Assembly: GCF_001194135.2 (NCBI RefSeq)
Contig: NC_068982.1
Coordinates: forward strand, 161,914,383 to 161,978,382
DNA length: 64,000 nt
Reading direction: 5' to 3'
Origin: Octopus bimaculoides
Taxonomy: Eukaryota
Shown: piece after piece, positions 5,813-64,000 of the stretch
Numbering within the stretch: the stretch's first letter is position 1
Layout: each line of letters starts with the position of its first letter
Translations under genes and position numbers: made by a program
The notes under the pieces: generated by a model
The model's database searches: none
What the model saw: only the letters and a program-made list of their open reading frames with translations
Told to the model about the DNA's origin: nothing

Positions 5813-8800
5813 TACTGAGTTTTTTTGTAGTTGTTATTCTTTTACAGTAGCATTTGATCTCTTTGATAAGTTATGGGATCTTATCTGAACATTTTGATTA
5901 AATAATTAAGCTACTTATGACTATTTATACTTACATTTAATCTTAATGCTCTCACACCATGTTCTGGCTTGTTAAGCATGGTATCTAATTTAGTTTTAAA
6001 TCTAAGATATTATTCAAAAAAGAAACTCTAGCAATTACTATGGCTTATTACTGTTATTCATTCCAATTTCACCATGAATGACAAGAATTTTACATGATAG
6101 AAGGTAAGATGGGACTACATCTCTTATACATATCTTATGTATAAAGATCATTATTACATATTAAATCATTGTTACTGGCTTCTTGTCACTGTTAGAGATA
6201 TAATATGTAAGTAATGGCATATCTGGCTATATAGGTATAATTGAGCCAAAGAGAAAGAACCTCTTTGTGATCTCTTGGCCTGTTCAAATAGCAGCAAAAT
6301 CTTGCTCAAATCACACCCTACAGCCCTGTAAATAGAAGTATTGAATACTCTAGTTCCACATATGTAGTGCTTGAAAAAAGGATGTGATGGTTATGGCTAG
6401 ATTGTCTTTGATCATATATCTGCTTGGCTAGGGGTAATTTGATGCACCTCCCCTGCCAAAAAAAACAAAAAAACATGTAATCTGAAGTAAGCTCTTTTCT
6501 TCTCTTTCTTAGATACTGTTTAACATTGACATGACTTTAGATCATGGTAGCCAAAACAAGCTACAATTTTATAGCTAAAGTGGTTTTTGTGTTGAAACAA
6601 TTTTCTTTTTACAGTCAGATAATCTTACCATTAACCACTCAACCATGAAGTCAGTAGAACTTGTTAGGAAATCTGGATTAAGAAAAGTTGACCAACTAGG
6701 CAGAAAAATATTCAAAAATGTCTTGCTAATTCTTATGAAATAAACAGGAAATATCTTAATCCTTAAAACAAACTGTGATACTATCAAATTGTTGTTTTAC
6801 AATAGATATTTAATAATATACAGAAGAACATAGATTATGCCAGTTTATTTATTTGTTTTGTTTGTTTATTTTTAATTCTTTAACATTGTCTCTCATGTCT
6901 GTTTTCTCACACAGTTTTAGTGATGTTCAGGCTTAGCAACAGTTAAGTCATAATGATAACCATAATGAAATACTCCCAATGATTGTTCAGTTGCACAGGC
7001 AGTAAATGTATACCTGCTAATATTATGGAGGTTGTAACATGGCCCATCACCACCTCCATCATATTTTAAGATTAATATCATAGTTTGAAAGTACTTATAT
7101 CTGGGAATATGCAACTGTTATGGACACATGCACAGTTATTCAAATATATGCCTATCTCTGTGGATTGATAAAGACTTATATTTGCAACCACTGATCACAG
7201 ATGCATTGTTTCTTTGTTCTGTTTCATACCATTACTATATTAGCTTCTTTTCATCTAAGCTAATGTGGCACCGTCTGTTCTCAACTGTTTCACCTCCTAA
7301 ACTCTGCACTAAATACTTTGCTCACTTCTTTCTCTTCAGAACCACATTTGGTTGGAGTTGCCCTCTCTGTCGTCTTTTTGCTATGAACATCAACTTATTG
7401 AAATTCAGGTTGAACATTAACTATATCAATCTTATCCCTTTCAGAGAGCTTGCGTGCTACCATTCTATCTCTGATTTAATCAGGATAATGATAAATTCTA
7501 ACATAGGTACAGGGCTACAAATTTTAAAGGGTAGATGGTTAGCCAATTAAATTGATCCAATACTCTACTGGTATTATATTACCAACTTAGCCTTCCATTC
7601 AAAAAGATGGATGGCAAACTTTGCATTGGCCAAATTTGAACTTGGAATGTAATGAACTAGAACAAATACTGTAAGCATTTCGTTTTATGTTGTAATGATT
7701 CTGCCTCAGTTATTACTGCACATTCTTTTGTAAAGGGGACCAATAAACAAAATCAACCCCAGTAGATAATTGGTATGTCAAAATTGTTATTGTCTCAGTT
7801 CAGCCTTTGTTAAGCAGAGTGATGATCAAAGATGTCACATCCATGACCATCCTGTCTTTATGATTATCAGGTCTTAAATTGTATCCCTCTCTCTCTTTTT
7901 TTTTTTAAATTTTTTAAGATAGTCAGGTGTAGCTTGAGGGAGATGTAACTGTTGTTTCTAACTGGCTGAATGATTGTGTTGAGACCCCCTGTTTGAAGTA
8001 TTTGTATTGTTTTATTAGTAACCTATGTAAACTGACAAATATAGAGGCCATAGCAGTTGTTTATATAATCTCAACACAAGACTGAAACTAATCCAACTGA
8101 TTATTCTTTTTCTGTCCATTGTATATTATTGTATTGAAATTTATATATAAAACAAGGTATTTGCATCAGTTGGTTAAAATCTACAAATATATTTTGTATA
8201 GCAGTGATATAATTACAGTTGAAAATGAAGTTATTGATAGAGCAATATCTAGAATTCAAGGCAGAAGTTTTGAGAATTGCTGCCTTTATTGAAAACCTAA
8301 GGTTTCCATCTCCTTATGTTAGGAGTAAACTGTATAAAAAATACAAAATAAAAAAATACAAATAAGGGTAATGGACTGTGACTGAGTCTTTACAGCAGAT
8401 GGAGAAGAATGAATTGACCAGCTTATTAAAGTGTGCAGGTTTGAGTGTCAGTGATTTGAGAGAGAATAATTGGAAACTGGGGTTGTTGGTCCATGGAGGT
8501 AAAGTAATAAGTAGACCTGTGATTAATGTTGCCTTGTCATAACCATTCTATCTTTATTTGGACATAGTGTATCTTGGACTGCATTATCCAATGTGTTGTT
8601 TTTTTAAGATGGTAGCATATGAATTAAAGGAGATGGATTTGATTACTATTTTTAGCATGTTGAGTGACCATGAAAAAGCTTCCTTTTGGCTTTAGTATGA
8701 ATATGTAATATGAATGGATAAAAGATGCTAGAGTGTGGATGGTTCCTGTAGTAGTTTGTAGAAGACAGCATTTGGTAAGTCAGTCATTGTTAGGACTGAT

Positions 8801-34834: not shown

Positions 34835-35026
34835 AACACAATAACAAATGCTGATAAACTACTAGCTGCTGCTGATGAACTTGCTCAAACTGGTGAATGT
34901 GATCCCAAGGAAATATACAGTGAAGCCCAGGAACTTGAAGAGCGCATGCATGATTTCATCACTGCTCTGGAAAGGAGAAGGGCTATACTTGATATGACTG
35001 TCTCATTTTATACACATGTTCATGAG
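34835..35026 (+). CDS. Trio: Internal coding exon of a Trio/Kalirin RhoGEF ortholog, spectrin-repeat region: NTITNADKLLAAADELAQTGECDPKEIYSEAQELEERMHDFITALERRRAILDMTVSFYTHVHE
   Basis: Acceptor ttgatttcag|AAC and donor CATGAG|gtaaat; 192 nt = 64 codons with no stop, phase 0/0. The peptide aligns by eye with vertebrate TRIO/KALRN NTYTNADKLLEAAEQLAQTGECDPEEIY...LLDMSVSFHTHVKE (recalled, not searched). Confidence 0.96.
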
Positions 35027-38000
35027 GTAAATATGATCATTTTGCATATTACATATCAATTAGTCAAGTTTCCTCCTCCTCTCACACACAAACCTTCTCT
35101 TTCTATTAAGAACCTTCTCCACCTCAGAAAGAATAACAGAAATTAAAAAAATTAAAAATAACCACTCCCATTTCTAGTTGTAAAAGAATATTCAAATGTA
35201 ATTAGAAGAGTTAATGGTAAATGAGCATTCACATCTTTAACTCTTTTGGTACCAATCTACCTGGAATCACCTTTGATTCCATGATACATAACTGCATTCT
35301 TATTTAAGCTACATTTTCTTAATCTTATATAAGAACCTTTTGTTGTATTGCAATCATGCTAGCTTAATAACAAAAAAAATTATTTTACTTAATCTTTCTG
35401 ACTGATTATTTAAAAAAAGACCCAAAAGAATTGAAGCACTCAGAGTGTGTATTACTTTTATGATAAAAAAAAGTTGAAGTTATTTTAATTTTCAATTAGT
35501 GCCTTTTTTAGTTCTACATATTCTGATGCCTGTGTACACAGCTACACTCTCACTGTACCTCATCCTCACACCCATGTATTTGGAAATGGAGTCGCAGTGT
35601 TTACTATGTGACTTGTTGCATGTTAATATTTTAATCATGTCAACTGTTTTATTATGTTTTTCCTGTTTCCAAGTCAAGTCAAATATTTTCCACTTAATTT
35701 GTATTGCAGTATATAAAAATAACACAATTTTACTCTGCTTAACTCTTCTTGTTTTCTAAATTTTCTTCTTGTGATAGAATTAATTTTAGAATTTAATAAA
35801 ATGAACCAAATTCTATAAAGAATGTTGAGACAGCTAAATGGTAGTAACACTATAAACTCCTTGATCAAGCATCATTATCTATTACCTTTATTCTCTTGTT
35901 GAAATTCCATCAAGAATAAAAGAGACCATGTACCATTATGTAAATGAGTTGTATCTGGTGCAGTGTTATTTACATTTTAATAAGTAGTATTCTGCTGCTC
36001 TCACACAGCATTTTGGGAAAGTAAGGTAAGTGAATCTTGATGGTTTTGTTAAATAACAAGACCAAAAAGTTTATTTCAAGCTACTGAAAAGGCCCTCATA
36101 AGACCTAAATATCACAGTATGACTAAATGCATAAGTCTATGATCATATATTTATTTAGTCATAGCTTATATTGTATTAGTACTCTGATAAATAAAATCAC
36201 AGACAACAGTAGTTCATCTCTGATAAAGTAGCCATACTCTTCTAGTTAACTTTCTGAGACTACATAATGCATGTACTTCTCTAATTCCAAAGATACCCGA
36301 GTAATCAAAGATGGGAATATTCATAACTAGAAAATTAATTTTAAATTGTAGTAAGGTGGTCTCCAAACATGAGGTATGTATTACTGACAATAAATGTATG
36401 TTTTAAAGGAGTTAAAATTACATTTATTAGCTGTTTAATCCAGGTTAAACTGATTGACAAACTTAGGATCATAGTATTACAGATATAACCACCTAATCTT
36501 TTTAGGAGTATCCACAACTACATTATCTTAGGCATCCTCTTTATTTTTTTGAAGATGATAGGGTTTGCAATTTAAAGGAGATTTGCCTGTTGGTTAAATA
36601 ATCTAGATGATTTTGAAAGTATCACTAAGCAAACAACTTGTTTTGAGAGGCTTCAGGTATAAGTGACGAACTGGAGATCTTCAGAGTAAATAATATTAAT
36701 TTCTAACATTGGTACAGAGCCACAAATTGTGGATGAAAAGAAGGGTTCAGTCAATTAAAGGATAAAATTAACTGTAACAGGGTTTGAACTTAGAATGTAA
36801 AAGGCCATGATTAAATACCTAAATGTATTTATCCAAGTCTTAATGACCTTGCCTCTCCACAACTTTAGCACTTATTGTATACTGGAATTTTTCATCAAAT
36901 TTTCACCATTATTAGAAGTTACCACACTGCTGTGTTATTTCTTCCAATATTTGTGACCTTAAACACTTTTCCTGGATAGAATAACTTTACATGTGATTTC
37001 CACGTTGTAAACCAATGAAGCCCTCCAATGGTTTTACTTGCTGCCTAAAACAGTGTACTGTACCTCTTCATATATCAATTTACAGCTTTCTGGGCAGGTT
37101 GTTAAGTTATCTTTGTAAAGGATACTTAAAACTCTGTTGGTGGAATCAAAGCTTTTTAACCTTTTTGCAACCGAAGAAAATCCTAGAATTTAGGGTGTTG
37201 AATTTTAGACAGTTTGTTGTAAAGCTAACTAGTATGCATATTGTAGGTTAATGTACCTTCATGCATCCTACATCCTTCTCCAAGTTATATATCTACAGGA
37301 GGATTTGAACTTTGCTCTGCAAATTAAATACTTTTGAATTTGGCAGTGTTTCTGCTTAGAGTAGAGTGCTATTCTGTCCTATGGTACTTATTTGCAGTTG
37401 TCATAACTGATGGAATACCACTTTTTTTTATAGTGATTTGGAATCACTTGCCAACCCACTGACACATTTTCTTGGCTTCTTACAAATAAATACTGACTAC
37501 ATTCTTGTGATAGTGTTGGGAGTTAGTTAGTCCTGAGAATGTCATACAGATCTAGAAATAAAACCTAGTGAATCATGTTACCAACATGTCAGTCAGTTAG
37601 AGGTGGTGATGTTATAATTAAGTGTATTAACATTTACTTTTCTTCTCCACCTTAATGAAATCTGTCTTTTTAAAATGCTCATTATGATTTCATTTACTTC
37701 AGATTACTAAAGTCTGTTAAATAATTATGGCTCTACCTTCTTTCATCACAGAGAAAATAGGTATGAAGTACAAGTTTAAATGTGACCACCTTATCTGATT
37801 GGTGTTGTTAACTACAGGTGATCAAATAGCAATTTAACTTAATTGACTTCAGTTATGTTTATTGTACATGTTATTACACAAAGAAGCTTTTACCTTGCAA
37901 CCTGGGTCAGTCCTGCTGTAAAATACACGAGGAAATATTGAGTTTATTGATTCTTCTGTACAACTGCGGTTGGTTGTAAGGTTTATGGAAACATGGCTAA

Positions 38001-38628: not shown

Positions 38629-38798
38629 TTAACATCTTGGCTAGAAGAATTGCAACAAGAACTGCAAAGTTCAGAAATAGCTGATACAGTGGAAGGAGCA
38701 GAGCACTTAGTAACACAGTTCAATGATCAAAGGGAGACAACTATTGAAGCAGCTATTAGTACGGTCAGAGAAGGAGAAAGTTTACTTGAACGGATAAG
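38629..38798 (+). CDS. Trio: Next Trio coding exon: LTSWLEELQQELQSSEIADTVEGAEHLVTQFNDQRETTIEAAISTVREGESLLERI(R)
   Basis: Acceptor tctattttag|TTA and donor GGATAAG|gtaagc; 170 nt, phase 0/2, in frame with the previous exon. Matches the recalled TRIO segment LWTWLEELQKEL...EGEDLIQQLR. Confidence 0.96.
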
Positions 38799-40897: not shown

Positions 40898-42453
40898 GTT
40901 AGTAGGACTGCACCAAGTACATACTGAGATAGTCTTGTACACTCTGGGTCAGGCCTGATTCTTCTTTGCCCCCCACTGCTGGTCATCTGAACTTAAGTCT
41001 ACCTGCATATTCCTTGAGTGAGCCTCTATTCCAATGCCTATTTCTACCTCCAACTGCCTAAACAGCTCTTCAGTTTCTTTCAAAACAATCTTACGTAGTT
41101 CAAAGTTGCTATTTTTCGCTTTCTTTTACCCCTTTTTCAAACTCTAGAAACACCTCTTTGAATGTCCTCCTCTTAGATACTTATGGTAAAGGGCCAAATG
41201 TTCAGTGCTTGATATCTTTGGTAGAAATAATTCTTTCAGTTTTTTTTTTCTTTTAAAGAATTATTTTTATGCATTTCTAGAGATCTATCAAACTCCTTGA
41301 AAGGTGTTACTGCTTGAAATGGTTATATAATATCTTCAGTTAAGCATTTCAAACATTTTTCAAATGCACCCAGGAATTTTCTTGCATGGTGAACTTTTGT
41401 CCTTCTTGCATTATTAATTTTTACTCCATTTTAACTATTGCTAGTTTTAGCTGGGCTAATCTAGATTTAGCAATTTAAAAATCTGAATGCCTTTTATGCT
41501 TCCCATATTAAAGTAATAATACTAAAACTGCCCTTGAAATGTTAACCATACATTAAAGACTTTATTGTTTCCGAATGTGAAATATCCCACTGACAGTCAA
41601 TAAAGCAGATAGTTGCAGTCTGTAGTTGGTAACTATTAGCAGTGATATCATGTGTTATCATCTCTCTGGTGATTTTATTGTAAATATATTTATGGTGTTG
41701 ATTAGAAAAGTCTAATAGAAAAACATTGTCTGCTTTATTGGTTCAACACTTGTTTTCTTTCATTGCTCCTGACTATTCCTGCTTATGCCTAAACACTTCA
41801 TTCCTTATTGTGCAAACACACATATACATATACAGAAAAACATACTTATATATGATGCACACACACACTGTTTACTAGGTACATCTGTTTCCCCATGCTT
41901 ACTTAGTTTATTTGATGAAACATTCTTATTACAGCTTGCAGATGTTCTTCCTACAACTGACCATTCAACCATGAAGTAGGACATAGAGTCTTTTCATTCA
42001 GTCAAGCAACGAGATTTATACACTTTGCATTGGGGCATTTCAAAGTGATATCTATTGTTATTTAACCCTAGGTTAGTCTTGATCAAGTAGACATGCTGTC
42101 TTTAATGATGTTCTAGCCAAGGCCATTCTCTGTTTTTTATTCAGATTTAGTGTATCTTGAAATAAATTATCCAATGTCCGAATTGAAGTGCCATAAGAAT
42201 TTTCCACCATCAGTTTTCTCTTTCTAGAGTCAGTCATAGAGTGTGTGTTCAAGAGAAATGAGGTCCACTTGTACTGTTTCTGTGAGTACACCATGCCACT
42301 ACCAAAAAGTTTGAAGGACATTTGGTTGCTATTTGTAACTGGTGGGCAACATATGGCTTGTAATGGCTCCTTTGTTAACTCCACAATGCAATGATTATAG
42401 CAATATCCAAAATTGCAAATCATCAGAGGCTCAGTAAAGAAATCAATCACATA

Positions 42454-43674
42454 TGAGGGGTGTTCATTAAAGATATCCCCTGACCCACTTCCCAAGGACT
42501 GGGATAAACAAAACTTGGCATAATTATTTGTCCTTCTCTACATAGCCACCACCAATGGTGACACACTTCTCCCATCACTTTATGCAGCTGTGAAGACCTC
42601 GTCTGTAGAAATTGGTAGGTTGCGCCTGGAGCCAAGACTTCACCTCATAAATAAGTTCATCATCATCTGAAAAGTGCTTCCTCTTCAAAAAAGACTTCAT
42701 GGTTGGAAAGAGGTGGAAGTCAGATGGTGAGAGGTCAGGGCGAAGGATTTCATAGCTGCAAGAGTGTGCTTTCGTCTGGGCAACATGTGCATTGTGAACT
42801 GGGGCGTTGTCTTGGAGGAGACAGACTCCTTTGCTCAGCATGCCACGCCTCTCTGCTTTAATGGCATCCCACGATTTCTGCAGCAGAGAAGCATAACATG
42901 CCCTGTTAATTGTGGTGCCCTTTGCCAGAAAATCCATCACCACTACTCCATGCTGATCCCAAAATACTGAGCATCACCTTGCCTGCTGAGAGTTGGAGAT
43001 GAGCCTTCTTTGGAGGTTATCATTCTTTGGAGTTATCATGCTTATATTCTTCAAGTGGACTTTAGTGATGGACCCATGCCAAAAAAGTCCTCCTCTTGGC
43101 TCATTACCAAAAGAGCCTGCTTCTGAAAAGGTGTGAGCATCTAGGGAATCTATCATTCACACAGCTTCCACATGTGCAAATGGTTGTGAATGATTTTTTT
43201 CCCACAGACCCTACACTTATCTTCACCCCTTGGGCTAGTTGCAGAATAGTTATGCAGCGATCCTACAAAATTGCAGCTTCCACTTTATGGATGGTGTTGT
43301 CTTCAATGGTGGAATGTGATTGTCCAAGAATAGGAGCAGTTTTCACCTAAGTCCAACTACATTTGATCTGGCGATGCCAGTGCTTGACTACATCATATGA
43401 TGCTGCATCATCACCAAAAGCTTCTTTCATCTCATCAAAAGTCTCTTTTGGTGTATGACCTTTCAAGTATAAGAACCTGATCACTGATCTGCATTCAACT
43501 TCCTCCATTATAACACGTTAGTCCACCTCAGTAACCATAAAAGACAAACAAATATTAGTGGAAAGTTGCAATTTACAATGTGACATGTAGAGACATGTAC
43601 AATTATATTTACACAAGTTCCGTTTCCTGCAATAATTGGAAGTGGGTCAGGGAAAATCTTTAATGAACACCTCA
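42454..43674 (-). mobile_element. Full-length, inactivated mariner (DD34D) transposon, about 1.22 kb
   Basis: TA at both ends (42452-53, 43675-76); ~38-bp imperfect TIRs TGAGG(GG)TGTTCATTAAAGAT(A/T)T(C/T)CCCTGACCCACTTCC; internal transposase remnant on the - strand. Confidence 0.95.
42524..43508 (-). pseudogene. Mariner transposase pseudogene
   Basis: Begins MEEVECRSVIRFLYLKGHTPKETFDEMKEAFGDD at ATG 43508. Contains a degraded WIPRML motif, LLQDNAPVH and PDLSPSDFHLF, and ends K*WEKCVTIGGGYVEKDK. Multiple stops and frameshifts; a 5-codon deletion between the 2nd and 3rd Asp restores D34D spacing when corrected. Confidence 0.93.
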
Positions 43675-50070: not shown

Positions 50071-50321
50071 CTTAGTGCTGCAACATGGGTTAGCAACCAT
50101 TATCGCAGCCTATGCCCCGCAGCCGGGGCTACCTCATGGACAGAAAGACCGATTTTATGATGCCCTCTTGCAGATTACCTCATGGACGAATGACAGGGAC
50201 CTTCTCTTTGTAGCTGGAGACTTCAATGGGCATGTTGGACAACATGCAGGGGGCTTCCATGGCATACATGGAGGCTATGGTTTTGGTTCCCGCAATGAGG
50301 AGGGAACCAAGCTACTGGATG
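50071..50321 (+). mobile_element. Isolated APE endonuclease fragment of an RTE LINE
   Basis: Stop-free LVLQHGLATIIAAYAPQ...FYDALL...VAGDFNGHVG...GYGFGSRNEEGTKLLD; AYAP, GDFN and RNEEG are diagnostic APE-domain motifs. Confidence 0.9.
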
Positions 50322-50619
50322 TATGTGTGTATTTGTGTGTATCTATGTGACTTTGTGTTTGTCTTCCACCACTGCTTGACAATTGCTGTTGGTTTGTTTA
50401 CATCTCTGTAACTTAGCAGTTTGGCAAAAAAAAGAGACTGATAGGGTAAGTACCAGGCTTAAAAAAAGAAAGTACTGGAGGCAATTTGTTCGATCACAAG
50501 TCAGTGTCCCTCTACGCCTGCAGGCTAACGAATGAAACAAATAAAAGATACGTTTACAGGGTATTTTTCAAGATCTTTCCTCTGTTTCACTTAAATTTTG
50601 AAATAATCAAGAATTTTGG

Positions 50620-51225: not shown

Positions 51226-52229
51226 ATAAAACTGCTGTAAGTTGCCACAGATCTTTATCCCCATATCTCCTAGAATGCTATACTTGTGTTCTGTCTTCCC
51301 ACTTCTGGTTGTTTTAAATTACTGTTACTGGAACAATTTCAGCCAACTCAAGACTGTCTACTTACAACATGTATGTATAGTAAGACAGGCACTGTAATTT
51401 ATGAGTAGATAACAAACTTTAAGAGGTGGTGTTTTCACTGTAATTCTGTGAAAACTTCTTAGAAGTTAGCAAATGAAATCTAACCCCACCCCCTTTTTAT
51501 TCATAGTTTCAAAGGCCATATTGTAATCTCATCATTTTCTATATTGCTATATTTTTTCTTCTTTTTAATGATATAACTTATAGTTTTAATTAATTATTTG
51601 CTTATTCCCAAACTTTGTTCATTCATAAATCTCAAATCTTGTTGATTCATGATTCACAATATTGTAAATACTAGAAATACAAGAAGGTTAGTTGAGATGT
51701 AGAAACAAACAAGCTAACATGCTTGCACGGATGAAGTACAAATTTTCAAAATTGTATCAATCCAACAATGATTCTGTGTGATGTATTTTCATATATACCA
51801 AATGTATGAAAAGTGTGTGTATGTGTGTTGAATTATATTTGTAGAGAGCTGACAGCTGTTAAGATGGTGCTTCTTGTCTTAGATAAATCCCTTTCTGTTA
51901 GCACTTTTGATACAAATGCATCTGGAACTTCTTTTATTTTTTTTCTATTCTATGATAAAAAAAACCCTCTCATTTTAAAGTGTGTGTATTCAAATTAAAA
52001 CTTATAATTTTATGTAAGGCAACTTTTTCTGAAATTACATTCCATAAATTAGATTAAAAGGTGAAAGTTAGGTCATTTTAATAAATCCTTAAATTTTTTT
52101 TTGAGTAATTGAAATGCAAGGACTATGTATTTCAATAGAAATATGGTTCTAAAATGCTTATAGATGTATCTTTTGAGATAATTTCGTGCATGAACATTGT
52201 TTTTGATTTTGTCGATGACATAGTATAAG

Positions 52230-52505
52230 TAGGGTTACTTAAGCACCATCTGTGAGAAAAACAGCACCATGACATAATTCACTCTGCCAGAAATTTGGAA
52301 ATGGCATGCTGCGCTGCTTGGCATTCACACTGGTAGCTCCAATATGAAGAGATGGTGAATACACAGAACAACTATTGGCTTGCTGTGTCTCTAAAGCATG
52401 TACCAAGGTTGATAAAAATCAGACATCTAGTCAACATTATGATTTTTGGAGTGCTCACTAATGATGGCGACATTATGCCTCCATTCCTCTTCCCACACTA
52501 TCAGT
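52230..52505 (+). mobile_element. Internally deleted IS630-Tc1-mariner (maT/DD37D-like) transposase remnant
   Basis: NTQNNYWLA...HLVNIMIFGVLTNDGDIMPPFLFPH resembles the N.QN.RW...VMVFG...DG.VMPP.FP segment of maT-type transposases. Termini not identified. Confidence 0.55.
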
Positions 52506-55500
52506 TTGGTCTCCCGGCTAAAACGATAATGATAAATTTTTATGTTTGCTTGACATTTTATAAGTGTGAAAGAGATTAAAATTTTGTTACTCCATATCAA
52601 AGGTTCCGACAGGAGTAGGTAGAAAATTAGAGCTTGAGACAATAAGATACTTTCAACCAATCAGAATTCTGTTTACATAATCAGTTTGATCAGTCACCTT
52701 CCTCTGTCAGTTGAGTCAAGTGTCAATACAAGCTGATGTTTATTGGTAATTAAACTTATTTTGCAACAGCTTTGTTTTTGTTGATAAGAATTATCAAAAA
52801 CTTTTTCCGTGATCGTAATTTGAGAAGACATACAGAAGTATGCTGAAGACGGACATAATCTCCTGTGGGCAAGAAATGTAAAATAAAGTTTATTATAAAC
52901 AACACAAACACTTCATATTTAATAGCTCTCACTGTGATACCTGTTAAGAAGAAATTATTTTTATTTAATGAAAATTTAATAAAATCTAATCATAAGTAAA
53001 ATTATCCTAAATACAACTAAATTGAAAATCTTTTTTCCCCTGGCCATATCAGCAATTCTGAAAACTTTTGGGTGCGAATTTTACATGAGTAGAAGCCTTT
53101 TTTTAACAATTTTTATCTTGAAAATCACCTGCGTAAATTACACAGGTGTGCAAATTGCATGAGTTTTTACAGTAATTTAGTTATGAATGTTAGATTACTG
53201 GAATGTAATNNNNNNNNNNNNNNNNNNNNNNNNNNNNNNNNNNNNNNNNNNNNNNNNNNNNNNNNNNNNNNNNNNNNNNNNNNNNNNNNNNNNNNNNNNN
53301 NNNNNNNNNNNNNNNNNNNNNNNNNNNNNNNNNNNNNNNNNNNNNNNNNNNNNNNNGAATGCATCTGTAGGGCTGCTACTCTTAATGTTTAGTTTTGGCT
53401 TTTGTAGTTTTGTTCTGAAAGTTTAGGTTTAGATTTCCGGTTAGTCTTGATTCCATCAGAGGTTTTCCTCCCTCATTACAATGAAATAACAACCTGAAGG
53501 AAACAATAAAAAGAGCAAGCTGTACATCTTGATAAATGAAATGTTTAAACTACAATAAACACAAAATAGCAACAAAAGAAAATAAAATTCCAGTTTAAAA
53601 TATGATATCAGTCTAAACAATGTAAAGCAGTTAGAAATGAGTGTTTAAATATAGGTAAACTTTTTTTAATCTATCTGGATCTGAAACTACTGAGAGTTAA
53701 GAGTGAATCTTTGAGTGGTTTCTAGAAACAGATGCCTTTATCTTGATGGCAAGCTGTTGTTTGTGTGTCAATTCGAAAGTCAGGTCCAGAATTATTTCTG
53801 TGAATCCAGTAATGTCAGTTGTAAAACTATCTGTTGTTCTAGGTATAGCTTTAAACAAAGCCAGCAAGTATTTAAGATAAACAAACCAGTTGTTCTCTCT
53901 CTCTCTTTCATTGGGTCAGTACATTTTGGTGGAACAGTGACTAATAATTTAACTACTTTTTTCTCATATTCAATAGTTTCCCAACTCAAAAGAACTTCTT
54001 TGTATATTTCTTTGTACATTATTAGTTGTTTTTGTTTGTCTTTGCCATCCCCGCCATCCTTGAGTCTGTTCTAGAAATACATTTATTTTACATATGTATT
54101 TCAGGTTATGCTATTTCTCTTATTGTTATTCATTTACAGAAAAGCAACATTCTTTGTAACTCTAAGTCCCTCCTTCACCACAAGATAGTGAAAGAGCTGG
54201 TGAGGTAGTTTAAAGTGTTGGGACAGTGACAGCAGTGGGGATGGGCCAGCTGATTCAGAGGTAAAAATTCTGGAATTGGTGTCATCTTGCAAACATGGGT
54301 TACATGAGTCAACATGTGAGCTTGTATGTGGTCATTTGACATACTAGTAGTAGTAGTAGCCAAATTTTACTCAAATCACACTAACACCTTAAAGAGGTAC
54401 ACCACAATCAGTAATGTAGTCCAGTGTACACTATTCTGGTGGTGGTGGTGAGATAGGACAGTTATGGTGTGAATGCATTTGATGGTGGGTCTGGTGAATC
54501 AGAGTCAACCTGAGGCTGAACAAAATTTGATTTGGTCTATCGACTGGAGTACAACAGATTATTTTCATCTTTTAACCTTTTGAAATTGACAATGTAACCA
54601 TGATGTTAACTATATGGAAGAAGGAGCCACATTGAAATAAAACAGATCAGCTTTGATTCTGTTACAGCCGTTCTTTTTGTGACAACTCTATAACAAGATA
54701 CATTGGAGAAGTCTTGTATCTTTTACCTAACATTATAGAATTTTGGTTAAGCACCATTCCTGTTCTGCTATATATCTTATCATATGAATGGTAGAAATGT
54801 GTAAAATGTTTTAAATGCAACTGGTTCCTATTCATAAACAAATTTAATAACCCTTGGAAGAAGATTTCAATTTTTCTTGTGCAGTAGTTTCAATATTTAG
54901 AGGTTTCTCACTTTTGGATAGAGTATCAGATATTATGAAGAGGAGATATATGACTTCCATACCATTTTCGAGGTCATGATTGATGTGAGTAGAAGAAAAT
55001 CTGGGTTATGTTTATTAGACATTGCCACATCTTAACAGCTCTTACAATTTATTCAATTAATTAAAAAAAAAAAAGAAATTACATATAGAGAATTTAATGA
55101 AGCAGTTGACATTTCAGTGTACAGTTAATCCTCTAATTATTATTCGTTTTAATGAACTTTTGATATATATTTTAAAAAAAAGATTTTTGCATGTGACTAT
55201 AGAAAAGTGGACATTAAGTGATGATGGTGGTGGTGTATATGAAGGACAAGAAGAAAAGATATTTGCAATGATTTTATATGTCTTGAGTGGTTATGAAAAT
55301 TTAGACAAGTCATTTGCAAGTATTGTCAGACAAAATGTTTTACAGCTGGATGTGCTTTGGGACAATAAGATAGATGGATGATGTGCTCTCTTTCAACTGG
55401 CTACACTGTAGTAACAGTAAAGGAGTCTTAGTCAACTCTCTCTACACAGATGTATGACCCACAAGTGGCATTCAAACTTTGGGCCTCACCGAGTCAATGA

Positions 55501-55666
55501 CAAGTGACTGAGACCTTTGGAGATATATGCTGTGCATGAGAAAGCCCGGCAAGCCAAGTGAGATCATATCCGCGGCCGATGCTAGTGTTGCATAACTGGC
55601 TAGTTTAAAAGTACCCTTCAATATACTGTGCTTGAAAAGACCTGTTGAGTTCAGTGAAATCGTTGT

Positions 55667-55930
55667 CATGGCCGATGCTAGTACCGCCTGATTGGTACCC
55701 ATGCTGGTGGCACGTAAAAAGCACCATTCGAGCGTGGCTGATGCTAGTGCCACCTGACTGGCTCCCATGCCAGCGGCGTGTAAAAAGCACCATTCGAGCA
55801 TGGTTAATGCCAGTGCCACTTGACTGGCTCCTGTACCGGTGGCACATAATAGGCACCATTCAAGTATGGTCGTTGCCAGTGCCACCTGACTGGCCCCCAT
55901 GCCGGTGGCACATAAAAAGCACCCACTATA
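55667..55930 (+). repeat. Four tandem 66-bp units inside a family C SINE
   Basis: Units start at 55667, 55733, 55799 and 55865; consensus like catggccgatgctagtgccacctgactggctcccatgccggtggcacgtaaaaagcaccattcgag. Confidence 0.92.
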
Positions 55931-58334
55931 CTCTCATAGTGGTTGGCATTAGGAAGGGCATCCAGCCGTAGAAACCTTGCCAGAACAGATTGGAGCCTGA
56001 TGCAGCCACCTGGCTAGCCAGTCTTTAGTCAAACCGTCCAACCCATGCCAACATGGAAAGTGGACATCAGAAGAAGAAGACATATATATANNNNNNNNNN
56101 ACTCAGTATCTCAGTCATACTAAATTATGTAGTCTGCTCTGAGACCACCACACTCCTTGGCACAAAGGTTAATTGTATACAGAACTGCATAGTAGTCAAG
56201 ATGTATGATTACAGGCTGTTTTAGTTACCACAGATGGAGACTGGCTAATTGTTTAAGGATTCATTATAAGTAGTCGTTGGATTTTATTGAGGCAACTTGA
56301 TTTAGTGTTGTTGTGTAGCAACTGGTCAGCTTTGGTTGAGCAAACTTATGCCAAACCTGAGCTAACCCACCAAGCTGTTGTTTCAGGTACACTATGCTAA
56401 GGGCCAAATTACACATCTCTACAAGTATTGGCTAATTCTATGGTATGCAATGTGACAATATAAATATGTTATATTATCTCCCATAAAATACCGTACAGAG
56501 TAATCAGCATGGACGCCAACTTGTTTCTGTGTAATGTTGGTATGTGCAATTCAACTTCTCAGTATTCTAAATACCTTACTTATTCCACCACAACTTTTTA
56601 TTGTAAATATTTACCTGCTACGGAACAGATTTTAAAATGTCAAGTGACTTTTGAATCTCTCTCCCTATGTCTTCTTTTTCTCACACATATACACTTTCAG
56701 ACGTTCCTTTAATGTCTTGATCATATGTAACACATAGTTATTCTGTTCATTATCGTTGTCTTCATTATCATCATCATCGTTTTATGTCAATGTTCCATGC
56801 TGGCAGACATCTATACTTAATGTGAAGTGCCCTGAAACTTGTGTCAACACAAATACCTCACAAAGATGCCTGTATCATTACTGTGTGTGTGTGTATATAT
56901 ATCAATCATCATCATCATCATTGTTTAACGATGATGATGATGTATATATATATATATAGGTACACGCATGGCTGCATGTTAAGAAATTGCTTCCCAACCA
57001 TATGGTTCTGGATTCAATTTCTGCAAGTGTCTTCTTCCATAACTTCAGGCTAACAGAAATCTTGTGAGTGGATGGGGTAGACAGAAACTGAAAGAAGCCT
57101 GTCATATGTGTGTATCTTTGTTTTATGTTTATCCCCAACCACTGCTTGACAACAGGTGCTAGTTTGTTAACAGTCCTGTGACTTGGTTGATCAGCAAAAA
57201 GAGACCAATCAATGTCTTCAACTAAACCCTTCAAGACAGTGCCCTAGCATGACCACAGTCCAATGACAGAAATAAGTAAAAGATAAAAGATTTGTGCATA
57301 TGTTGTGTGTTTATATATATATGCATATATAGTTATTTTGGTATATCTGTGACTCATTGACTGCATTTATGTAAGAGATGAATAAATTCTAATGGATTTG
57401 TATTTACTAGATATATTTTTGACATTGTGACCATTGTATTACTTGAAATAACATTCTTCTAATCTAGAATTATTTAAGATATTTTTCTTTTTTTGTTATT
57501 CAAATTAAGTATTATATTGTGTGTGTGTACACACACAAATATATAAATGTATGTATGTAAGTATATAAGTATGTATGAAGAGTTGAAATCCAAGTGATCC
57601 ACGCCCACAACTTCACCTACTGCTAGCTGCTATTCCTACCAACATCATAGTCTTAACTGCTGTTGGTCTCGGAATAACTGGAAATAGTTAATATGAAGTT
57701 GCATAATGCCTGGCAGTTATCCAGAATCACCTGAAAGCACAGTGAAACATGTGACTTGCATGTTTATTAAATGAGCTGTAAGATAGCAGAACTGGAGCCT
57801 TATAATGTGAACTGTTTTATTGAGTAACTTTGCTCTTAATATATGCAATAATAGACATAAGATAATCATGATGATTATTTGAGCTTAGGAAGTTCTCTGT
57901 TGTAGAAATCCCTTCCCCTCAGATATTGCCATATTATTAAACAGTGGCTATCTTTGTTTATAAATAAGTTTTGGGAATTGTTTTAGGAAGTTTTATGAGG
58001 TTTTGTTTTAATCCTTTCATTAAAATTAAATTAAAGCTATAACTGCTCCAGGGAGCAGAACCAGAGACCATGGGTCTGCTCTTTGGCATTCTTACAGCTA
58101 CTATGATAGCTTTTGTTCCTTTGAACTAGCAATTCTACTCTAGACCCATCCCAGTGCACTTGTCTTTTCTCTTAGTCATTTCAAATGTGCCTACCCAATA
58201 CACTCCAAAGTAAACACTTGCCTACAATTTGTGATTGACAGAAGTTCAAGCTTAACATCAAACCCCATAGATCTCACCACACATATGCACCTTCGTTGTT
58301 TCCTCTAAATAAATAAATAAATAATAATGATGAT

Positions 58335-58680: not shown

Positions 58681-59932
58681 CAATAATAATAATGATAATA
58701 ATGGTAACAGTATCAAAAGTAATAATAAGGTGTACACACATGCACACACACACAATCAAGTAATTTTTCAATGATTTCTAATAAATATATTTGAGATTAT
58801 AATTTGAACATAATGTATTGTCTAGTTGATGGTCCTATCTTGTCTGACACAGTATCAGATGTATATAAACACATATCTCTCAGCACACACACACATGCAG
58901 GTCTGTCTATTTTTTGGATTTTATGAATATATTAGAGACATTAGAGAAAGTAATAATTGTTTTAACTGGTTGACATAATCTACGTAATTAACTCGTATAA
59001 AAAAAAAACGAAAAAAAAAAAACAAAGGAAAAGAAAAAGTAAAAAGTTGAAATCAAAAGTAATTTCTGAATAATTCTTGTTGGGAAGGTGGGGGTGAGAG
59101 AAATCACAGGGTGACTATAGGGGAAATGCTTTTATTACTTTCCTTTAATGTATTCTGTGTGTGTTTTAATTGTGTGATATAAAACTGTAGCTAGTTAGTT
59201 AAAATTGTTAATTTAAACACTGATGAGGAATAATAAAATAAAAAGAAAAAGAAATATTGTACAATACTGGCAAGTGACTGTTGCTGTTGAAGGCAGGCTA
59301 GTCGTTTTTTTCTCTTTTTTTTTGTTTGTTTTTTTTTTTTTACTTACACTGAAACTCGCCTGTCAGCTGCTTCTAGCTACTAACACATGCTACAGTAGTT
59401 GATATTACCATATCAACTATGGAGCTGTAAGCATGCTTCTCTACTAGCTCCAGCTCCATCTCCAGCTATTAATTTTCGTACTCTCACAACAAGCAGCTCC
59501 TTGCATTTTTAAGCCCCAACCAGCTTTTGACCACATTCACTTCATTTTATTGGGGTAACTATGTAATATGTTTTAATAATAGCTTTAATGTGTAGCTCCT
59601 CAGTGTTTTGTGTGTCAGCTCAGATGATTGCCGGCCAACATTTACGCTGAAAAGAATGATGTGCATTGGGATTGTAGTTTGTTTTGTCGCTCGACAACAG
59701 GTGATTCTGGCTGATGAGCAAACTTCACTTCGTACAACTTACATGACATGAAAACAGGAGGAAAATGGCCATCAGAAAAGAAACCTTCAGACTGTTTATA
59801 AAAAACTTTTTATGGGATTATATTACCTGACAGCTAAGAGTGAATAATTTCTATATTTACCTGTAAAGTTCTCTGTGAATTATCTATGTTGTTCTTGTTA
59901 GCCATGAGATATTTGTGAAAGCCACCAGCACC

Positions 59933-60170
59933 ATGCCGACAAGACCACACAAATCATTTAAAAAATCATTCCGGAATTTACAAACCAAAGGCATTCTTTC
60001 ATTTGTACTATCAGCTGTCTATGTGCTCATTAAAGTCATGTTTATCATTGCTATGTTTTTCTGTGCAAAATTCCTGCACTATGGTGAGAAACTCATTCGT
60101 TTTTTATTTAGTGGTTTTGGAATGGATCCAGAAAAAGTCAACCCAAATTCTGATTATTGTCATATAGAAG
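59933..60170 (+). CDS. Candidate unannotated exon (alternative first exon or internal exon) encoding a basic leader plus a hydrophobic, probably transmembrane, segment
   Basis: accATG at 59933 opens 79 codons (MPTRPHKSFKKSFRNLQTKGILSFVLSAVYVLIKVMFIIAMFFCAKFL...SDYCHIE-G) ending at a consensus donor GAAG|gtaagt. Possible acceptor gttcttgttag|C at 59901/59902. Upstream ~600 bp is repeat-free. No homolog recognised. Confidence 0.45.
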
Positions 60171-60689
60171 GTAAGTACATATTTCTTCTATTGTTTGTAT
60201 TGGAATTTCTGTTTGGTGCTCTGACTGGAGGGGTTATCATGCAAAAATATCTCACACCCTTCAGTTTGCTATAAACTTCTTTAACTCTACCGTTTGTTTT
60301 TAGCAGTTATTAACTGAAAATTTTCAGATTGTACATTATATTGAATTTATTTTATTCTTGAAAATAGGGAAAAAAATGAGAACATTGTTTAATTTTCTTT
60401 TTTCCTTTCTTTTTCCTTTTTCTCTTTTTGTTTTCGTTTTCTCCATGTTTTCTCCTCCCACTTTCCTCCTTGTATGATGCAGTGATGCTGTCACATGCTG
60501 AACATTGCAAACTTACATCTATTGATCTAAAACAATTACGATGTGGGTGTATACATATATACTAAACTACTAGCTATCTCAAAAAATCAGGCAATATATT
60601 AACTATTTGACAATTAAACTACCTGGAATTATATTTACTGATTACTGTCATATTTATTGTTGATCTTTAAATCAGTTAGAGTTATAGTT

Positions 60690-60890
60690 CCTGTTTGATA
60701 ATGAAACTACTCAGTGTTATTGTATTTGCTGTTTGACTTAACTGCCTAGTGTTATCTTTACTGTCTGATAATGAAACTACCTAATATTGTTGTACTTTCT
60801 GTTTGACAAACTATCTAGTGTTGTATTTACTGTTAATGAAAACTATCCAGTATTATTGTATTTGCTGTTTCCTAATTAAGCTGCTCAGTA
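60690..60890. repeat. Degenerate minisatellite, ~30-bp units with dimeric structure
   Basis: Recurring taatgaaactac..agt.ttattgtattt.ctgtt. Confidence 0.7.
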
Positions 60891-61783
60891 TATATTAAAC
60901 ATTTTACATCAAACTTTATTTGGTGTTATAAATAAATAAACTTGTTAAAAACACATGCAACATTGTTAATGAGATATCACAATAATTTCTACCAGTTACT
61001 GGTATAATTTAGTTACTTTGTTGGATGGCAGAGTGGACTCTGTCAGATTGGACTATTTCTTTGAGACAATACTGTTTATCACTGAGTAAAATGGGTGTGG
61101 AATACTTTGAAATTCTCCCCTAAATTTTTGATTCAGTTTCTGGTAAATTACATATCCAGCCAGTTCAATATCCTCGTTGAATTAGATATCACTATTGACA
61201 AGACAAAACAACAATCTTTTTTTTTAACATTTGTTTGTGCTGCTGTATAGTGTTTCTAACAAATAATTTATATTCTTCAGAAAATAACAAAGTTATTTCT
61301 AAATGTTATGTCAACTTAACCGTAGGGAAAGATAGCCTTTTAGTTGCTGTTTGTATTGTGTGTGTGCGTGTAAAATAAAATGATTATACAAGACAATAAA
61401 TATGGGCCGAGTGAATGAATGTTTTAGTTGTAAATCCAACAAGAGACATTAAAATTAATTTTATATTGTGAATCTCTGCATCTAGTCGAGTGGTTTTTAA
61501 CCTTTAGTGATAGATAAATATAACATCCTGCTATAATGAACCAGTGTTTTGGAGATTTTGTGTTGATCACTACTTACTAAGTTTTTATGTGAAGTTTATC
61601 TTGTCAGAGAAGAGTTTTTTAGGTTTGTTTTTCAAAGGATGCTAGCTGTTATGACTATAATATTAAGTTAGGGGTTCAAACACTTAATTATACAGAAATA
61701 ATCTTCACAAAAAACTCAAATTATAATATAGTTATTTCTTTGGGCTACACCCCTGCAGTTTTTTTATTTTTATTTCTCTGAAG

Positions 61784-61833
<50 letters not shown>

Positions 61834-64000
61834 TCTTATGAGAGTGACCAGTGTGTATGAAATTGTTTACTTATCACTGTTAACTGATGTATTTCAGTAC
61901 AATTATTTTATCAATATTTTTGTATATGCTGTTGCTTAACTTGGATTTTAAATGTCTCTCTATTATTATTATTATCCAAATTTTCTGGCAGAAACCAGTC
62001 AGAGAACTGTATAGATGTTTTTTTTTCCCTTTTCTACATTCATTCCTTTATAAGCAAGTTGAGATATTGATTAATTGGCTGGTTGGTTGATTGGTTAGTT
62101 GGTTGTGTGGTTAATTGGTGCATTGATTAGTTGATTTAAAACAAAAACATTTCACCAGACACCGTTGTTATTTCTAACTGGACCATGCAGTAGTTCAACT
62201 TTCATACACAACCAGTTCTTCAAAAAAAGTTACGATACGCTCAGATTGTATTCAACTGTATTCTCATTTCATAACCAGTGTCATGCAAATGAAAGCAATC
62301 TCCAGTTATTGATCATCAGTGTCTTTGATCTAACACATACGCACACTTGTCCAAGTTATAGACTTTATCAGTTCAAATCAATGGTGGGGAGCTTCTATGT
62401 GGTTGCTTAACCTGCCAGAAAATGTACCAGGTCTCTATCAATACCACATCTTTCTTTTCCTTCCTTCCTCCTTCCTTTCTTTTTTCTTTCTTTCTTAGAG
62501 AACACATTGGATGCACAATTTCTAGAATAGAGGAAACAGTGAGGTTGGTCATGGCTTGAATGCCTTTAACTAGGTAAAATGTGGTTGGTTTGGATAATAT
62601 TTTATTAAAGTCTAAATGACAGAAGAGTTGTAATTGAGATGAAAACAGTCTGGACTTTTATTTTCCTCTCCAGGATATCTGCTTACAATTTGATTGTTAT
62701 CAAGTTCTTATTCTCCACCAATTTGCTACACATGTACATGCATAAATGGTTTAGTTGAATAGAACAAAGCATAATGTAGTTACCAATACTATAAACACTC
62801 ACTCTAAATTGTGTGTGTGTGCACGCGCACGCACAGACACTCACACTTAGTTACATACACACATACACACTCAATCTAGAGAAATGAATTTAATATTAAA
62901 AAATATTTGTAATCTTATTGATGTTTTCTTGCATCAGCACAAAGCTACAGATTTATTGGCGATGAGAATAGTTGTCTATTATTCAAAATACTACAAGGCT
63001 CAACAGTCTGTTGTTGTTGACTGTCCTAACTGTACACTTCATGGATATTTTTTAAGGTAAAGGACATACATTGTAAAGGAGGGATTATTGTTGATTTAAG
63101 TGATACAAGCATATTATTGGTTATTCTTTTGTAATGAAAAGTAATTCATTCTGGTAAGATTTGAACTCAAAACATTGAAGGTGAACTCTGTATCCTATTT
63201 AGTGTTTCTGTTATATTGGTAGTGATGAAGATTGTTTCCCAGCCTTAAGACATGTTTTGGAATGGAAGATGTTCCATTCTAGTGAAATAACTGATGCTGA
63301 TTCAATAGTCTGTAATTATTTCACTGCTGAAGATGGAAAGAAGAGTTACTAAATTATGCTCCAAAATGTATTTAATATAAATCTCTGCTATAATCATTTA
63401 TTGTACAGTTATATAAATAATAATGATTTCTTCCATTAGTACAAGGCCCGTACATCGGCAGAAGTGGCATTATAGTTAATTCAATGAAACATTTTCCCCC
63501 AATATTTGATTAGTACTTTTATTGAACACTGAAGGATGACAGAAAAATCAATCATGACAGAGTTTGAACTCAGAATGTATAGGAACATAACTAAATACTG
63601 CAAAGAATTTTGTGTGGCACTCCACTTATCCTGCTAACTACTGTTATAATAAGAAGAGTAATTGTTAATAAAGTGGTAGGGCATACCTACTAAAAGCTAA
63701 GACTATCCCCCTAATCTACGATGTATCTATGAAGGAGCTTGACTAATTAACTGTGTATGAAGACTTGGAAACAGAGATTTCAGAATCTTTACAGTGCTTG
63801 TTGGTGTCATCTGGTGCAGTTAGAAGTTTATTAAAAATATTGTGAGAAACAGATTGTTCTTATCACTATTGCTCACATCCTTTCTGGAATATTGTTTACT
63901 TGATAACCCACTGAAACGACACAATGTAGATTACACTATATATTACTTTGTTGATATATAAATGTGTGTGTGTGGATGATAGGCACATGCATGGCTGTGT

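Follow-up and report, generated by a model that had tools for sequence, protein, structure and literature searches.

Introduction

Trio is a key regulator of the neuronal cytoskeleton and a guanine nucleotide exchange factor (GEF) acting on Rac and Rho, and is grouped with Kalirin and UNC-73. In mammals, the Solo/Trio8 isoform is anchored in the membrane through a C-terminal tail, which is encoded by an alternative 3′ exon after GEF1. To our knowledge, no protein of the Trio, Kalirin, or UNC-73 type has been described with a transmembrane tether at its N-terminus. Here, we analyzed a stretch of 64,000 nucleotides from Octopus bimaculoides (NC_068982.1, positions 161,914,383 to 161,978,382; hereafter the window, with coordinates counted from its first nucleotide), in which a short exon at 59933–60170, hereafter the hidden exon, lies within the Trio gene and may open a separate nested gene. 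Solo/Trio8 shares with this locus the general idea of a short membrane-anchored Trio isoform. It differs in that its anchor is C-terminal, whereas the predicted anchor of the hidden exon is N-terminal and carries an ATG.

The closest parallel in gene structure is found in vertebrate KALRN, the Trio paralogue. The intron that separates KALRN exons 10 and 11 contains the promoter of the Delta-Kalirin isoforms, whose products are devoid of Sec14 and of four spectrin repeats (PMC3048553). The hidden exon resembles this arrangement in its same-strand start within the spectrin-repeat region, from which a product would likewise lack Sec14 and the first spectrin repeats. However, the Delta-Kalirin exon is essentially 5′ untranslated region (UTR) and its product is a soluble cytosolic protein (PMC3048553), whereas the hidden exon holds 80 conserved residues with a predicted transmembrane helix. 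Moreover, the phase of the hidden exon is mismatched to the next Trio exon. Positional equivalence of the two starts was also considered and rejected. The primer sequences in PMC3048553 put the Kalirin exon 10/11 boundary, and thus that intron, just before the equivalent of window 34835–35027, so that the Delta promoter lies two introns upstream of the hidden exon; therefore, the parallel is one of analogy, not of orthology.

A sequence-only reading of the window had proposed that the element is a real coding exon for a membrane-anchor-like peptide, and had suggested three uses for it: a first exon for a membrane-tethered, truncated Trio, an internal Trio exon entered in phase 2 and left in phase 1, or a terminal exon read through its own donor. 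In the following, these uses are weighed against comparisons with two other octopod genomes.

Comparison of three octopod genomes identifies a coding exon

The features that the sequence-only reading had listed, namely the ATG, the frame, the donor, the acceptor-like site, and the read-through tail, were all present where it had placed them. The frame is open from 59879, directly after a TGA at 59876–59878, to a TAA at 60272–60274, and the ATG at 59933 stands in the context ACC ATG C. The coding part of the exon (59933–60170, plus strand) consists of 79 codons and one further base, and the 80 encoded codons read MPTRPHKSFKKSFRNLQTKG-ILSFVLSAVYVLIKVMFIIAMFFCAKFL-HYGEKLIRFLFSGFGMDPEKVNPNSDYCHIEG. 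It ends at the phase-1 splice donor AAG/GTAAGT (60168–60176, plus strand, cut between 60170 and 60171). Within the window, the exon island is single-copy; elsewhere, only its poly-T edge found matches.

Taken alone, without comparison, this open reading frame (ORF) could be noise, because frame length, hydrophobicity, and donor count were all ordinary for a T-rich window. Nine stop-to-stop frames in the window reached at least 131 codons. A transmembrane-like 19-residue stretch was found in 38% of the window frames of at least 80 codons, and the maximum 19-residue Kyte–Doolittle hydropathy of the hidden exon, 2.56, was matched or exceeded by 11% of them. Perfect donors (MAGGTRAGT) numbered two in the 64 kb, against 2.5 expected. 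The second of these, at 36023–36031 on the plus strand, was set aside as probably due to chance, since every frame is closed by stops shortly before it and the related genome fragment L006 does not conserve it.

The close relative is represented by cluster P0001 on five identical 1.2-kb Logan contigs (SRR11869384/85/90/91/94), which were compared as L001 and are colinear with window 59312–60561. These contigs were read as genomic, not as evidence of expression, because the runs yield identical contigs, whose ends fall in low-complexity sequence and in which A-to-G changes are not in excess. The P0001 and window peptides share 99% amino-acid identity. The ORFs are 98.3% identical in nucleotides, and the four substitutions comprise one nonsynonymous and three synonymous changes. 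Flanking identity was 93–97.5% upstream of the ORF and 83% beyond 60232; conservation in this relative is nearly uniform and extends 60 nt beyond the donor. Such a pattern, together with the unremarkable length, hydrophobicity, and donor count described above, would suit a chance open frame that overlies conserved non-coding sequence, for instance an enhancer or an RNA structure.

The comparison with a more distant octopod speaks against that explanation. This genome is represented by P0014 on a 53-kb ENA contig (L008), and it came to light when 1.84 billion representatives were searched exhaustively with HMMER. A word-index protein search had missed P0014 on the first pass despite a 14-residue exact match (RFLFSGFGMDPEKV), and negatives of the word-index searches are therefore weak. 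The L008 exon starts at an ATG at 7463, runs for exactly 80 codons to GAAG/GTAAGA, and shows 75% amino-acid identity with zero indels, such that the same 80 codons are free of indels in the window, L001, and L008. In the claimed frame, nonsynonymous divergence (dN) between the window and L008 was 0.138 and synonymous divergence (dS) 0.90, giving a dN/dS of 0.154 (Fisher p = 1.7e-8). The differences at codon positions 1, 2, and 3 numbered 14, 9, and 27, respectively, a third-position bias with p = 0.006. The shifted frames gave dN/dS of 0.83 and 1.30, and both contained stops; the two Trio exons of the window, used as positive controls, gave about 0.01–0.03.

The edges of this conservation were sharp. 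When window 50–64 kb was compared with 17.8 kb of L008, the sole alignable block was 59957–60202, and ungapped identity fell to 43% over the last 30 nt upstream of the ATG and to 37% over the first 60 nt downstream of the donor. As observed, the L008 tail after the donor is unrelated to that of the window, and G/GTAAG is kept in all three species at the point where protein similarity stops. A conserved non-coding element carrying a chance frame is barely credible on these data, since divergence in the distant comparison is codon-periodic with a dN/dS of 0.15 in the claimed frame only, no indel occurs over 240 nt, and the conservation ends exactly at the ATG and at the donor. RNA structure was likewise rejected as the cause of the conservation, with a structure z-score of +0.29 over the exon (no signal) and no Rfam family. 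On the strength of this sequence comparison, 59933–60170 is a genuine coding exon with its own start codon, conserved in three octopod genomes. Constraint that spans the ATG to the donor is, in turn, the signature of a first coding exon. The proposal of a hidden real coding exon for a membrane-anchor-like peptide is thus well supported by the 80 indel-free codons, and its expectation of a dN/dS below 1 was borne out. The result also means that two fragmentary contigs can suffice to validate a single-exon ORF resembling T-rich noise.

Alternatively, if the GT at 60171 were unused, an unspliced transcript would encode a complete small membrane protein of about 100–113 residues. The frame indeed remains open past the donor in the three species, for 33, 22, and 37 more residues, all hydrophobic, and in the window this read-through begins with KYIFLLLFVLEFLFGALTGGVIM... 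and stops at 60274. The available contigs are also all colinear with the genome. However, the start of the intron (60171–60274, plus strand) shows no coding constraint: in L001, a 4-nt deletion breaks the frame after the donor, so that P0001 ends with ...SALTGLLY and a stop, and in L008 the tail is unrelated, at 37% nucleotide identity. Furthermore, the hydrophobicity of the tail is at the chance level for a T-rich intron, G/GTAAG is conserved exactly where protein similarity ends, and AATAAA is absent from the 400 nt after the donor. An unspliced small protein is therefore quite unlikely. The same deletion and the same unrelated tail speak against the suggestion that the read-through serves as a terminal exon of Trio.

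The hidden exon encodes a predicted signal anchor

The peptide is, by prediction, one transmembrane helix of about 25–29 residues (approximately residues 20–48) that follows a basic leader of about 19 residues (residues 1–19) and precedes a conserved juxtamembrane motif, EKL[IV]RFLFSGFGMDPEKV. AlphaFold2, run with the three-sequence alignment, modelled one long helix over residues 7–62, with predicted local distance difference test scores of 85–93 over residues 21–50. L008 keeps the hydrophobic core, and its substitutions are conservative (V/I, V/L, I/V, A/T). The positive residues before the helix are R4, K7, K10, K11, R14, and K19 in the window and K10, K11, R14, K17, and K19 in L008. No Pfam family was found for the peptide or for its read-through form in a Pfam scan.

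According to the positive-inside rule, a basic flank stays cytosolic. The charge flanking the helix is about +6 on the N-terminal side versus a net of about +2 after it, and because of this bias the topology is predicted to be N-in/C-out, that is, a type II signal anchor. In this topology, the sequence downstream of the helix would be luminal. Introns of phase 1 occur preferentially behind a signal or anchor sequence, and in that position they are typical of secretory-pathway genes. The hidden exon is similar to the first coding exons of type II (signal-anchor) membrane proteins, such as Golgi glycosyltransferases, which also encode a short basic cytosolic leader and a helix of about 25 residues, followed by a stem and a phase-1 intron. 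The likeness is architectural only, and it differs in that no catalytic or luminal domain and no family match was found for the hidden exon.

Possible attachment of the hidden exon to Trio

Two plus-strand exons in the window match spectrin repeats of Trio/Kalirin. The first, NTITNADKLL...HVHE (34835–35027), is entered and left in phase 0, and its counterpart in Kalirin is where exon 11 begins. The second, LTSWLEELQQ...LLERI (38629–38798), lies about 21 kb upstream of the hidden exon; it is entered in phase 0 and left in phase 2 through a donor at 38798 that reads ATAAG/gtaagc. In a tblastn search with an approximate human TRIO sequence, the hits were these two exons and no others (E = 1e-22 and 4e-9), such that no further Trio exon was detected at 38.8–64 kb. 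They are also the only blocks conserved with L006, and an orthologous single-exon ORF is labelled 'triple functional domain protein/kalirin' in one JGI source. The assembly of L008 also holds the ortholog of the Trio exons, which is 82% identical to the window in the exons and unalignable in the introns. Since the hidden exon follows 38798 by about 21 kb, with no Trio exon detectable beyond it, it is intronic in Trio, and it lies on the same strand as the Trio coding exons.

In two more distant species, L009 (ENA ERZ25073285) and L010 (ERZ25069865), four upstream Trio exons are packed within 10 kb. The intron after the equivalent of 38629–38798 is larger than 10 kb in both as well, and it seems to be consistently large. 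A search over the 10 kb next to the Trio exon turned up neither the hidden exon nor the following Trio exon in L009 and L010.

The hidden exon could be an alternative first coding exon of Trio, transcribed from an internal promoter and giving a Trio that is N-terminally membrane-anchored and lacks Sec14 and the first spectrin repeats. It stands in sense orientation within the spectrin-repeat region, its conservation begins at the ATG as that of a first coding exon should, the upstream sequence is kept in the close relative, and the Delta-Kalirin promoter between exons 10 and 11 offers a precedent (PMC3048553), although an analogous one. However, because the Trio exon at 38629–38798 leaves in phase 2, the next Trio exon needs a phase-2 acceptor, and the hidden exon has a phase-1 donor. 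Direct joining would therefore be out of frame, and an extra exon of length 3n+1 would be needed. In addition, the predicted N-in topology would place the GEF domains in the lumen, which is wrong for a cytosolic GEF, and no chimeric product was found in the protein databases searched. We therefore regard a Trio first exon as unlikely. The earlier proposal for a tethered Trio accordingly stands only in part: an ATG-initiated first coding exon fits the conservation, whereas attachment to Trio is disfavoured by phase and predicted topology. The phase problem had itself been raised as a caveat.

A specific form of this explanation would be an octopod Trio isoform that starts from a promoter in the spectrin region, takes its N-terminal helix from the hidden exon, and uses an extra small exon to restore the frame to the GEF exons; we consider it slightly more doubtful again. 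If it were true, a Rac/Rho GEF would be permanently tethered to the membrane. A hidden exon that feeds Trio would make the protein the first Trio/Kalirin/UNC-73 member with an N-terminal transmembrane anchor, and it would bear on the localisation of Rho-GEF signalling in cephalopod neurons.

Another possibility is that the element is used by Trio as an internal cassette (poison) exon or as an alternative terminal exon, entered through an upstream acceptor. A putative site of this kind, a pyrimidine-rich tract with AG (tgttgttcttgttag), lies at 59886–59901 on the plus strand. Its sequence gttcttgttag/C is cut at 59901/59902, and when joined to the phase-2 Trio donor at 38798 it reads ...RIS-HEIFVKATSTMPT, so that in the window, entry in phase 2 leads into the frame of the ORF. 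All three species have an acceptor-like AG with its pyrimidine tract and a candidate branch point: L001 keeps the tract with a 3-nt insertion, and the site in L008 reads ttctttttag/ at 7393/7394. In L008, however, phase-2 entry gives AGT GGT ACA ... TTC TAA, a stop before the ATG. The spacing between the AG and the ATG varies, as the window has 31 nt, L001 has 34 nt, and L008 has 69 nt, and the residues encoded before the ATG are unrelated, being HEIFVKATST in the window and ELLFLIIN in L008. With a length of 269, 272, or 307 nt, a cassette would also throw Trio out of frame, and a dN/dS of 0.15 from the ATG onward is unexplained by a poison-exon role alone. Such uses are thus very improbable, and the suggestion of an internal phase 2-to-1 Trio exon fails on the TAA in L008, the unconserved residues before the ATG, and the frameshift that a 269-nt cassette would cause.

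A nested gene for a type II membrane protein is favoured

The reading that we favour, at slightly better than even confidence, is that the hidden exon opens a separate gene for a type II membrane protein, nested on the same strand in the large Trio intron. It is preferred over attachment to Trio because of the phase-1 donor, the predicted N-in topology, and the secretory-type phase-1 intron. In this gene, transcription would begin either just upstream of the exon, where a TATATTA lies at 59819, or in a non-coding exon further upstream that is spliced in through the AG at 59901. Translation would start at the ATG at 59933, and the first coding exon would end in phase 1 at the donor, between 60170 and 60171. 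The N-terminus would be cytosolic and the remainder luminal or extracellular, with the later exons of the gene located beyond the sequence at hand. Same-strand nested genes and lineage-restricted orphan membrane proteins are similar in that a conserved ORF lies in a host intron and is found here in three octopod genomes only. They differ in that this gene is known from one exon, with its own promoter and terminator being putative.

Several observations weigh against a nested gene. No second exon was detected when window 60171–64000 (3.8 kb) was compared with L008 7701–17816 (10 kb) by blastn, nhmmer, and tblastn; the plus-strand ORFs downstream of the donor resemble AT-rich noise. No spliced product with the peptide was found in the 1.84-billion-representative library or in a 5.8-billion-cluster index, collections that appear to lack annotated eukaryotic proteins, as a Trio exon query returned only single-exon ORFs. 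The Logan contigs continue unspliced past the acceptor-like site and the donor alike, and they are cut off in low-complexity sequence, namely poly-T and (AT)n. A same-strand position inside Trio equally fits a Trio isoform. In the distant octopod, L008 and the ortholog of the Trio exons are on separate contigs, such that linkage to Trio is not demonstrable there. Finally, the peptide has no detected homologs beyond the three octopod genomes and no Pfam match.

The last point rests on several searches. HMMER searches, together with single and profile word-index searches, found no homolog of the peptide outside the three octopod genomes. Of these, the word-index protein searches returned P0001 only and the profile search added P0014, with no spliced or annotated product. 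A scan of JGI metagenomes with back-translated motifs gave 582 pattern matches, none of which was a true relative. In an identity look-up, the window's own 113- and 119-residue ORFs had no record in the protein collection.

If the hidden exon does open a nested gene, it is a candidate for a gene model so far missing, one that belongs to no known family and is marked by an unusual juxtamembrane motif that is conserved. In any case, the present comparison adds the start of a predicted membrane protein, selectively constrained and apparently restricted to octopods, to a very large intron of a key regulator of the neuronal cytoskeleton.

Sequence around the hidden exon

Two motifs upstream of the exon are common to the window and L008, and their roles are suggested by their sequence and position. 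The first is a TATATTA at 59819–59825 on the plus strand, within GGATT(T)ATATTAC (59814–59826). It is possibly a TATA-like core promoter element, but such strings are common in AT-rich DNA. The second, TTTACCTGT (59856–59864, plus strand), could be an initiator-like element or a branch point (YTNAY) serving the AG, at distances of 42 and 25 nt. The spacing from GGATT(T)ATATTAC to TTTACCTGT was 40 nt in the window and 38 nt in L008, while the remaining upstream sequence was unalignable. The segment between the acceptor-like AG and the ATG (59902–59932, plus strand) is probably 5′ UTR and contains a 4-codon upstream ORF that starts with the ATG at 59905.

Further upstream, a block at about 59341–59500 on the plus strand shares 97.5% of its nucleotides with the close relative, compared with 83% beyond 60232, and may be a promoter, enhancer, or 5′ UTR. 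It contains the palindromes CAGCTG and GCATGC and an 11-bp hairpin, AGTAGTTGATAT-TACC-ATATCAACTAT, and its fold was better than those of shuffled sequences (z = −3.1). No Rfam family was found for this block, and no counterpart was detectable in L008. Downstream, about 300 nt past the donor and within a poorly conserved intron, the close relative matches the window almost perfectly over a stretch at 60466–60514 on the plus strand (TGATGCAGTGATGCTGTCACATGCTGAACATTG), which may act in splicing or regulation as an intronic element.

Other features of the window

The window is AT-rich eukaryotic DNA, and its plus strand is T-rich. It forms part of a gapped scaffold, with N runs (assembly gaps) at 10.3–11.0, 16.7–16.9, 20.8–21.4, and 53.2–53.4 kb and short ones near 38.4 and 46.7 kb; several of them adjoin microsatellites. 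At 42073–42973 on the minus strand, adjacent ORFs of 140 and 122 amino acids resemble the halves of a mariner/Tc1-type transposase (...QDNAPVHNAHV...), suggesting a decayed intronic DNA transposon. ORF fragments similar to a LINE/RTE endonuclease domain were observed at 50075–50350 on the plus strand (...FVAGDFNGHVG...) and at L008 1–387 on the minus strand (...IATFNVRTLN...ICIQEH...). A related repeat is shared by window 52227–52485 and L008 3448–4110, on opposite strands. At 55472–55971, a GC-richer, minisatellite-like tandem repeat (up to 51% GC) carries long open frames on each strand, and its minus strand encodes a recurring GASQVALA...LEWC unit.

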